The notes below the pieces were generated by a model. That model saw only the letters and a program-made list of their open reading frames with translations, was not told the DNA's origin and did no database searches. Shown here piece after piece: positions 33,101 to 36,100 of a stretch of DNA of 64,000 bases (its first letter is position 1; each line of letters begins with the position of its first letter). A program made the position numbers and the translations under genes. The stretch comes from Antechinus flavipes (lineage: Eukaryota), in assembly GCF_016432865.1 (NCBI RefSeq), contig NC_067399.1, positions 389,732,001-389,796,000 of the forward strand, given 5' to 3'.

Positions 33101-36100
33101 CTCCACATTTCTGAGTGTCTCTATTGGAATAACAGAAGGTAGGCTAAGAACTCACTAAAAGCAACTGACTCAATAAGTGATTGCAAAAATAAGGCAGTCC
33201 AGAAATTTCAGTCTGGCTTTTCCACTCTCCATGTTAGTTCCTTGTGTAGGTTTGTGTCACATTGGGTATATATTTTGAACCAGAGCTAGGATTTCATTGG
33301 CAAGAGAAATTTCCAGGGGAGAAACTTCCCTTACCAAGGTACGACGCCTGTTCAGTTAAGGTGGTGTTGGAGAATTGCCCAGGGTAACTGAAAAATTCAG
33401 TGACTCTTCATGGAGACTATCATAATAAGAAGGGCTAGAGAGGCCAGGTCTTCCTGCCTCCCAAGCCAGTTTTTTAGCCACTACTCCAAGCTGTCTTCGC
33501 AACCTGTTTTATGCACTCTGTAAATCATGAAGCCCTATTATAAGAAGATGCATTTAATGACATTACAAATTTGAATATATGTAGTCATATCCCTCTTATT
33601 CTCCACTCAACTAGATGGGAGGTCTAGGTAGACCCTTATCTCTCTCTATTCTACTCTCCAGATTAAAACAATAGCTTTGTATGCAACAGCACTAAATAAA
33701 AGATTTGTCGATAATTGCTCAGGAAGAGTAGCAAGAGATACAAGGATCCACATCATTAAAGAAGGCTTACTGGTTAGAGAGCAACACTGTAGGCAAGGCA
33801 GGGCCCAAGTACCAAACCAAATCCAATATGGTGATATTCTTTTCTTGACTCCCCCTGAACAAATAAAACAAAACAAAAAAACTTCCCAAGTATAATATAG
33901 TTTTAGCTATTTAGGGATAGGTATACTAAGTGGCAATTGAGTTTTAAAGCTAATTATCCTTCTCTTTCTTCTTTTGCTTAATTGTGAAATGGAATTGACA
34001 AACATGCCCCAGACAGGAGTCCTACCTCCATCCTCTGTTCCACAATGGAGAAGATCCTTTCAACCCCAATGCTGAGCCCCACGCATGGCACCTTGCGGCC
34101 CTTGGGGTCAAACATGCCAACAAGACCATCATAGCGCCCTCCAGCAGCCACGCTGCCCACACCAAGTGGTTCTTCCCCCTGTCGGGCTGGGGCCTGAAGA
34201 AGCACTGCTTCATAGATCACCCCTGTATAGTAATCCAGGCCCCGGGCCAGGCTCAGGTCAAAGGTGATCTGTGGGACATGAAGGTATGGTCAGTCCCAGT
34301 GAACAGACACATCCTGGGATCCTGTGCAGCCTGCTGGGGCCTGCCCTTCCCCTACTCACTTTCTCTGTAATACCAAACAGGGTCAGATACTCAAATAGCA
34401 GTTTCAGGTCCCCCAACCCCTCCAGGGCCTGCTTGTTCTGTGAGAGTTTGGGATCCTGCAATAGTTGTTCTATTAGGGACACTCCACCTGGGAAAAGCAG
34501 ACAAAGAGAAGAAAGGATGCCACCCATCAAATTTTCATTGATTACATGCATGATTACATGGATTACTAATGAGGTAACTTTACCTCACTATTCCAACTGC
34601 CTAATCTTTTTAACCAATATGTGTATTTACCTCATACAAAAAGAGCAAGAAAAATTTTTATAACACAAAGGAAATGAAGATATAAGAAGGCACTAAAACA
34701 ACATTCACTGGAAGAATGATTCACATGAAGTAGGAAAATCAGCAATTCTCCCTTCCCCCAAAGAATGTCATCATACGCTACCTTCTCCTCTCTCCCCACT
34801 AATACTTACCATGCTGCTTCACATAGGCCCCAATAAGATCTGCCACTTCAGGGGCCAGGCCTTTTTCTTCCACCATTTCATTCTTCACATCTTCCCATGA
34901 CATCTGCGGAAACATTGGATTCAAAGGGCCCAGAAATGATTCAAACAGTAGAAGGTGCAGTTTTTTCTTTGGGATGAAGGATCTTTTGGGCAAAGGTCCC
35001 TGTACCTCAATTCAAGAGTAAAGGCCCTCTCCCTCCCAGACACTGTCTTCCATTTCCTGAGATGGGGTACATTTCAGGGGAAAGAAGTAGGAGCTGTACA
35101 TGTAAGTTATTTGTCACCTTGTCTAGCTTGTCCACTGAAGAGCAAATGGTACGGAATTTGCTGTCAGGAACACCACAGACATTGAACATTCCATCCAGAA
35201 TTCTCCTGTCATTCACCTGAGGATTCCAAAGTCACCTTAAGAAGTGGAAATTTCCACCCTCAAGTTATTCCCTTCAAGATCCATAATAGCAATAGTATTC
35301 CTAAGGCCTATTTTTACCTCTCCAAAGAGGACAGAAGAGTTCAGTCATAAGAGAGGAAGACTGTTAGAGCCCTAATTAGTACCACCAAGTTAGACACAAT
35401 CTTTTCTCTCACCTTAATAAGGAAGTCCCCCAGTTGAAGTGCACTCAGGATCTCACAAATTATCTTCAGACATTCTGCATCAGGGATCATGGGATCAAAC
35501 TGTCCAGCAATGTCAAAATCCTATACAAGAAGTGAAAGGAAGAAGTCTCAAGTCAAGAAGACTGATTTCCAGGCTCCAAAACTCCAGTGTCCAGACCCCC
35601 ATAGGCAACACTACAGATCTTAACTGATGCCCTTAACTGCATTTCCAAGCCTAGAAGATGACACACATTCATCAAATTCTTCAAATCACTTTTTAAAAAT
35701 TTCATCTCCATCATCTCTTCTAGCAAAATCTCCCCTAAGTGCTTTTCCTTTAGCCATTTATTTGCTCTTTCCCTGCTCAGACTAAAGCTTTGATTAATTC
35801 TGATGTACAAACAACTGGTTTTCACACACCTTCATTTTTAGCTCATCATTTGTTCTTGTCTGGATGTATCTAGACACAGGTACCATGTCTATATATGTCA
35901 CTCTAAAAAGTGAATACTTTATAAATTCTAACTGATCTCAGTGAGGACTCAATGCCTTGAGCTTTCTTGGCTTTGACATACTCACACACTGGTAAAATTC
36001 CCGGTAACGACCACGAGTCATTGCAGGGTTATCTCGACGGTACACCTTTGCAATATGATAGCGTTTAATGTTGGTTAGTTTATTCATTGCCAGATATCGA

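Follow-up and report, generated by a model that had tools for sequence, protein, structure and literature searches.

Homogenisation of an exon 9 to exon 10 block between the inverted paralogs HARS1 and HARS2 of Antechinus flavipes points to interlocus gene conversion

Interlocus gene conversion is a well-known process, and human RHD and RHCE exemplify it between linked inverted paralogs. Here we describe a new case in two intact histidyl-tRNA synthetase genes of Antechinus flavipes, HARS1 (cytosolic) and HARS2 (mitochondrial), which lie head to head in a window of 64,000 nucleotides (nt) of contig NC_067399.1 (positions 389,732,001 to 389,796,000) that contains no N. Like RHD and RHCE, these are two functional paralogs in opposite orientation, kilobases (kb) to tens of kb apart, with exon-scale non-reciprocal tracts and a mosaic of identity. 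Unlike RHD and RHCE, they are far older, with a duplication that predates the monotreme–therian split and, beyond the tract, a synonymous divergence (dS) of more than 1; their products act in different compartments, and the same block has been converted repeatedly in separate amniote lineages. A full-text literature search found no report of gene conversion or concerted evolution at HARS/HARS2.

Concerted evolution driven by repeated conversion, in which selection preserves islands of divergence, has been reviewed (PMC3924837) and is described for the GOT1 paralogs of Tigriopus (PMC3728101). As in these cases, HARS1 and HARS2 show low divergence in part of the gene, while other parts diverge along with functional differences. 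Unlike them, the HARS genes are mostly divergent and carry one small homogenised island, which is the end of the catalytic core and not the regions expected to set compartment or tRNA specificity. We consider it very likely that the block of exon 9, intron 9 and exon 10 underwent interlocus gene conversion between HARS1 and HARS2 in the dasyurid lineage, and that it is a recurrent conversion island in other amniotes. The locus is a clean and statistically strong example of partial concerted evolution between two essential enzymes of different compartments.

A homogenised tract shared by HARS1 and HARS2

BLASTN comparison of the window with itself gave a single long inverted match between HARS1 and HARS2 (34009-34495 versus 47046-46578), with 90.55% identity over 487 columns, 28 mismatches and one gap. 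The remaining matches between the two genes were exon-sized (90-159 nt, 77.6-82.2% identity), and no HARS1/HARS2 intron other than intron 9 aligned in this self-comparison. Local alignment of the tract ran from 8 nt upstream of exon 9 to 17 nt into intron 10, in agreement with an earlier, sequence-only reading of this DNA, which had seen similarity stop at the intron 8 acceptor and fade shortly into intron 10. Exon 9 differs between the paralogs at 8 of 128 positions (proportion of synonymous differences, pS, 0.15-0.16) and exon 10 at 11 of 243 (pS 0.12). Exons outside the tract are 73-81% identical, with differences at 32/120 sites in exon 3, 21/108 in exon 6, 21/99 in exon 7 and 28/147 in exon 12; our recount of these six exons gave exactly the numbers reported earlier. 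Exon 11, whose copies differ by 3 nt in length, was excluded from the fixed-length per-exon comparisons in Antechinus and from the trees. Intron 9, said to hold five differences in 73 aligned nt and an 18-nt indel, is indeed identical at 68 of its 73 aligned sites (93%, versus 0.63 in shuffled controls), the additional 18 nt lying in HARS1 at 34334-34351. Thus, 19 exonic and five intronic substitutions plus the 18-nt indel separate the tract copies. A block of ~0.5 kb has been homogenised non-reciprocally between inverted copies ~12.3 kb apart, with gene order and flanks undisturbed.

Synonymous sites reveal the same boundary. The Nei-Gojobori dS between HARS1 and HARS2 is tenfold lower in exons 9-10 (0.14) than in exons 3-8 and 11-13 (1.37, where the estimates saturate), the outcome that gene conversion predicts for the dS check proposed with the sequence-only reading, and the corresponding nonsynonymous divergence (dN) is 0.026 versus 0.155. 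Differences occupy 19 of 371 sites in the tract versus 238 of 961 elsewhere (Fisher p=6e-19); at third codon positions the counts are 11/124 versus 137/320 (p=4e-13). Moreover, none of 20,000 codon permutations yielded a 371-nt window with fewer than 40 differences (p<=5e-5). The guanine-plus-cytosine (GC) content is highest at the tract (0.58 versus 0.32-0.45 around it), and GC at third codon positions (GC3) is 0.52-0.62 in the tract versus 0.33-0.52 in exons 3-8, with exon 12 equally high. This peak fits GC-biased repair, although it is not decisive.

The tract and the remaining exons support different trees. Homologous loci were taken from echidna, platypus, Myotis davidii, Heterocephalus, Sorex fumeus, alligator and chicken, and their exons 3-12 were placed by exact length, splice sites and reading frame. 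In the tree of exons 9 and 10 (371 nt), Antechinus HARS1 and HARS2 are sisters (support 100/97), and holding the four mammalian HARS1 sequences together costs 163.5 log-likelihood units, so that orthology is rejected by the approximately unbiased (AU) test (p-AU 3e-53). In the tree of exons 3, 4, 5, 7 and 8 (535 nt), HARS1 forms a clade (97/99) and the Antechinus pair is rejected (p-AU 0.009). The predicted pattern, in which paralogs pair in the tract and the other exons group by orthology, was therefore recovered. The HARS1 clade on unconverted exons indicates that the duplication predates the monotreme–therian split and that the tract coalesces much later. The head-to-head arrangement, which is also found in echidna, platypus, Myotis, Heterocephalus and Sorex, and hence in monotremes, marsupials and eutherians, likewise bears out the old duplication proposed earlier. 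End branches of the tract tree measure ~0.045-0.049 for HARS2 versus 0.004-0.007 for HARS1, and amino-acid changes after conversion fall mostly on the HARS2 side.

Both versions of the tract were also found in independent data. Logan contigs from four public runs, labelled as four different organisms, were placed on 33300-35300; their divergence from the window in the unique flanks is 0 to ~2%, which indicates that their sources are the same species or congeners. HARS1-type tract letters run contiguously into HARS1 intron 10 (records 1, 8 and 14) and, on the other side, into intron 8 and exon 8 (records 5, 12, 18 and 25), and HARS1-type contigs of other runs cross the 18-nt HARS1-only stretch without a gap (records 3 and 11). 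A separate contig of 530-535 nt shows seven differences in 34383-34495 and then continues into HARS2 intron 8 and exon 8 (records 6, 13 and 19); seven is also the count of HARS2-specific substitutions between the window's own copies in that interval. Inside the tract the contigs break and word depth rises, as expected where the copies share 31-letter words. Both tract versions are real, each joined to its own flanks in the contigs of four organisms.

Three placements within these contigs deserve a separate record. At 34281 the window has A on the forward strand, and all contigs placed there, from four runs, read G, the HARS2 letter; the A could reflect an error in the consensus, a micro-conversion that is polymorphic, or a variant that only the assembled animal carries. 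At 34161-34168, the only contig of run X1 among those listed is one of 91 nt with three HARS2 letters. In run X8, a 262-nt contig at 34048-34309 has the HARS2 letter at >=7 of the 11 sites that distinguish the copies, its depth being that of a single copy, with no HARS1-type contig among those listed for that interval; this contig may represent just the HARS2 copy, or conversion may have gone further in that organism.

Age of the event and recurrence in other amniotes

Residues shared by both paralogs within dasyurids place the conversion in time. Two dasyurid-only states occur in HARS1 and HARS2 alike: the A in LLQAP, and T or I in K-I-T/I-FD, where other marsupials have S. The HARS2 tracts of Antechinus and Sarcophilus are mutually nearest (four differences) and share I, R and D changes; since these changes followed conversion and are common to both species, the event predates their split. 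On these residues, the conversion took place once dasyurids had separated from the bilby lineage but while Antechinus and Sarcophilus still shared an ancestor. Such a date fits the dS of 0.14, the intron distance of ~0.07 and the congener contigs, which at 0.7-2% divergence in the flanks already carry the same paralog differences. The exchange much later than the duplication that had been proposed is upheld by the tenfold lower dS and the near-identical intron, with the amendment that it is not recent, being older than this split. The three peptides offered as marks of conversion fared less well: they are common to both paralogs, but two of them, FGITEK and EQRME, are found in most marsupial HARS1 and HARS2 and are not diagnostic.

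Homogenisation of the same block extends to other marsupials, which were compared as proteins over a tract of 124 amino acids each. In a tract-only search with bilby HARS1, bilby HARS2 (98%) and wombat HARS2 (95%) outranked the HARS1 of every other species. Both proteins were compared in six marsupials: the tract shows 0-7 differences in 124 residues between HARS1 and HARS2, and the remainder differs by 20-25%. Lineage-specific tract residues occur in both paralogs of bilby (S, GKE, S), koala (Q, R, V), Dromiciops (K) and Petaurus (D, Q), and likewise in both HARS1 and HARS2 of didelphids.

Similar blocks are present in monotremes and sauropsids. In echidna the block spans 555 nt at 94.6% identity (exon 9 99.2%, intron 9 92%, exon 10 96.3%), and exon 6 is 95.4% identical; in platypus the values are 96.1% for exon 9, 95.9% for exon 10 and 99.1% for exon 6. 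Chicken has a gapless stretch of 777 nt at 97.6%, from exon 8 to exon 10, together with 95.2% in exon 5, and low identity in exon 3 (70%) and exon 7 (70.7%); its conversion tracts amount to 699 nt of coding sequence, about half of the total. In alligator, exon 9 (91.4%), intron 9 (84%), exon 10 (86%) and exon 5 (93.7%) are alike. The Anolis locus, which holds just the last 728 nt of the HARS2-like gene, was left out. Chicken and alligator have the two genes in tandem, with the HARS2-like gene on the HARS1 strand and upstream of it, versus the mammalian arrangement in which only HARS2 is inverted, and the chicken HARS2-like gene is head to head with ZMAT2. Thus, the same block has been homogenised independently in other marsupial lineages, monotremes, chicken and alligator, forming a recurrent conversion island. 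The concerted evolution of the catalytic core of the cytosolic and mitochondrial enzymes suggested by the sequence-only reading is hence supported, and it reaches far beyond the Antechinus genome.

An apparent older trace in Myotis was rejected. A 484-nt BLAST match crosses intron 9 there at 79% identity, because two conserved exons bridge the intron; intron 9 itself is 0.74 identical, no more than in cross-species comparisons (0.66-0.77).

These tracts bear on the published history of the family. In the analysis of Waldron et al. 2017 (PMC5608375), HARS and HARS2 sequences group by clade and HARS2 monophyly is rejected, from which the authors concluded that amphibians, birds and mammals each had their own duplication; the word 'conversion' is absent from the text. 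Rotwein 2020 (PMC7255616) reported that the synteny Ik-Hars-Hars2-Zmat2 extends as far as coelacanth and that mammals differ solely in the direction of HARS2. The chicken conversion tracts would yield exactly the clustering of Waldron et al. and offer a way to reconcile the two studies. Because marsupials, monotremes, a bird and a crocodilian all have the block homogenised, trees built from whole genes of the HARS family are misleading. Our tree of exons 3, 4 and 7, which escaped conversion, does not resolve the backbone, and HARS2 monophyly is neither rejected (p-AU 0.30) nor shown. Independent origins of HARS2 (PMC5608375) need re-testing on never-converted exons, and synteny (PMC7255616) already points to one origin. 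A broader proposal, which we advance tentatively and with slightly less than even confidence, is that for >300 million years, and in most amniote lineages, a self-perpetuating island has homogenised the end of the catalytic core, in any gene orientation, and is quiet in eutherians. HARS and HARS2 would then stem from one old duplication followed by a mammalian inversion, and the published independent duplications would be an artefact of conversion.

Further observations concern other sites of these genes. The exon 6 similarity of monotremes (4589-4696 versus 20065-20172 in locus L001; 5435-5542 versus 18648-18755 in locus L003) is a second homogenised piece with identical peptides; exon 6 is 80.6% identical in Antechinus, so it is not homogenised there. 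Exons 3-4 of turtle and crocodilian HARS2-like genes are almost HARS1-like, which suggests still wider conversion or a younger duplication. Within the Antechinus tract, HARS1 has CGC (Arg) at 34095-34097 versus CAC (His) at 46958-46960 in HARS2. HARS2 carries this His, within KGHK, in eutherians and monotremes as well as in Antechinus, Sminthopsis and Petaurus; Sarcophilus, bilby, koala, Dromiciops, wombat and Trichosurus have Arg there in HARS2. The substitution affects a CpG, so the pattern is open to three accounts: recurrent mutation, selection and patchy conversion. Two predicted HARS1 proteins contain a duplicated exon, exon 3 in Myotis davidii (P0249) and exon 9 in Heterocephalus (P0240), and these are probably model or assembly artefacts.

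Conversion mechanism and alternative explanations

Based on these data, we propose a mechanism for the Antechinus event. HARS1 on the reverse strand and HARS2 on the forward strand are old head-to-head inverted paralogs, between which ~0.46-0.49 kb was copied one way by intrachromosomal non-allelic gene conversion. A likely route is a break in one copy that was repaired off the inverted paralog with no crossover, since a crossover between inverted copies would invert the promoter-proximal halves of both genes. The position of the tract may be favoured by exon 10, which is the longest exon and among the most conserved, and by intron 9, the shortest intron of both Antechinus genes. Only the exon 9-10 block would then offer uninterrupted homology over several hundred bases, long enough for a heteroduplex to form, and every conversion would restore that homology. 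Intron 9 is short (73-187 nt) in 13 of 14 gene copies from eight species, the exception being Heterocephalus HARS1 (512 nt).

Purifying selection with no exchange at all, acting on the catalytic core, on its synonymous sites and on an intron element such as a splicing signal or embedded RNA, would also produce a conserved block, and the tract does encode the most conserved part of the enzyme, including motif 3, with low dN in every comparison. Selection of this kind should, however, hold orthologs together as well. The pS between Antechinus and eutherian orthologs (HARS1 with HARS1, HARS2 with HARS2) is normal in the tract, at 0.48-0.61 versus 0.60-0.65 in other exons, and intron 9 identity across species is at chance level, 0.66-0.78 versus 0.93 between the Antechinus copies. 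With neutral divergence between orthologs normal, the block is not specially constrained: it is young, not conserved. Nor did an Rfam search of 29000-49000, which covers the HARS1-HARS2 region including intron 9, match any family at E<=1. Moreover, eutherian paralogs have diverged freely in exons 9-10 (pS 0.46-0.83), and the tract tree rejects orthology. We thus regard constraint as an extremely improbable substitute for conversion. Equally improbable is an assembly artefact, in which reads of one paralog built part of the other by collapse or chimerism. Near-identical paralog segments do break short-read graphs, and the Logan contigs fragment in the tract as word depth rises there; yet a collapse would give identical copies, and these differ at 27-28 sites plus the 18-nt indel, with open frames. 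The contigs of four organisms join HARS1-type letters to HARS1 introns 8 and 10 and HARS2-type letters to HARS2 intron 8 and exon 8, which excludes the assembly collapse that had been named as a possible refutation. The A. flavipes RefSeq protein also equals our HARS2 model, although it perhaps derives from the same assembly and so is not independent support.

An exchange with crossing over, either as two successive inversions or as an unequal exchange replacing the segment, deserves marginally more weight but remains very unlikely. Inverted repeats 12 kb apart can cross over and invert the intervening DNA, and the orientation of HARS2 differs between mammals and sauropsids (PMC7255616). Reciprocal exchange, however, swaps segments without making them alike, so that homogenisation needs non-reciprocal copying, and the gene order, orientation and unconverted flanks of Antechinus match those of other mammals. 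The length of ~0.5 kb, which lies within the typical range of mammalian conversion tracts, also counts against crossing over.

Several points weigh against conversion as we describe it, or limit its reach. The trees rest on short alignments of 371 and 535 nt, and the donor-direction AU tests (0.059 with eutherian HARS1, 0.166 with eutherian HARS2) single out neither donor. The homology island as the reason for the tract's position is one that we infer. The comparison of other marsupials is one of proteins only. In monotremes, GC3 of the tract exons is 0.83-1.00, mostly >=0.93; high GC3 alone can lower synonymous differences, so the monotreme case is carried by intron identity (92% and 85%). 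Finally, the three eutherians have no homogenised tract in exons 9-10, and the island is not universal.

Conversion between HARS1 and HARS2 would have functional and practical consequences. The part repeatedly overwritten is the end of the catalytic core, with the histidine- and ATP-binding peptides and motif 3, which implies that this segment may be interchangeable between the two enzymes and that specificity may reside in other exons. HARS1 and HARS2 have reportedly diverged in tRNA recognition, as a zebrafish study cites from Lee et al. 2017. For annotation and variant work in these species, exon 9-10 reads cross-map between HARS1 and HARS2.

Gene models and other features of the locus

The automatic spliced models of HARS2 were corrected by hand, and the features of both genes are listed in Table 1. 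HARS1 shares 99.0% protein identity with Sarcophilus HARS1, and the HARS2 model is identical at 514 of 514 residues to the A. flavipes protein 'histidine--tRNA ligase, mitochondrial-like'. The 13 exons of each gene occupy the same positions, and exons 3-10 and 12 are equal in length. Exon 10 of both genes matches Pfam PF13393 (catalytic tRNA-synt_His), HARS1 exon 10 corresponding to positions 250-308 of 308, the last 59 of the profile (E=7e-11), and HARS2 exon 10 matching with E=1.4e-10. Exon 12 of both genes matches PF03129 (HGTP anticodon-binding domain). HARS1 exon 2, a query piece of just 30 amino acids, gave a weak WHEP match under the cutoff.

Table 1 Features of the HARS1-HARS2 locus in the A. 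flavipes window (aa, amino acids; bp, base pairs)
Feature	Coordinates	Strand	Description
HARS1 coding region	30180..39296	-	13 exons, 511 aa, intact; WHEP domain in exons 1-2
HARS2 coding region including stop	39661..48113	+	13 exons, 514 aa, intact; N-terminal presequence replaces WHEP
Spacer between divergent start codons	39297..39660		364 bp; start codons 39296 (-) and 39661 (+)
Converted tract, HARS1 copy	34009..34495	-	8 nt of intron 8 acceptor, exon 9, intron 9, exon 10, 17 nt of intron 10
Converted tract, HARS2 copy	46578..47046	+	Alignment to HARS1 copy
HARS1 exon 9	34360..34487	-	128 nt, phase 1 start, ag/gt borders
HARS1 intron 9	34269..34359	-	91 nt; shortest intron of the gene
HARS1-only 18 nt in intron 9	34334..34351	-	Indel between copies; alignment
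HARS1 exon 10	34026..34268	-	243 nt, longest exon; encodes motif 3, end of catalytic domain
HARS2 exon 9	46586..46713	+	Hand-corrected gene model
HARS2 intron 9	46714..46786	+	73 nt
HARS2 exon 10	46787..47029	+	Gene model, PF13393

From its position, the spacer is a putative shared bidirectional promoter region. The RefSeq A. flavipes HARS2-like protein has 577 amino acids, its first codon being an in-frame ATG at 39472; this lies 63 codons before the 514-residue start, which is common to Sarcophilus and Sminthopsis. The extension is probably an annotation artefact, because the ATG at 39472 sits within the spacer shared with HARS1.

Two repeats lie elsewhere in the window. An inverted 0.88-kb pair with 70% identity (43905-44781 versus 52390-53201), one copy of which is in HARS2 intron 4, is probably an interspersed repeat. 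A perfect 48-nt palindrome is present within a 63-nt inverted repeat at 21836-21898.

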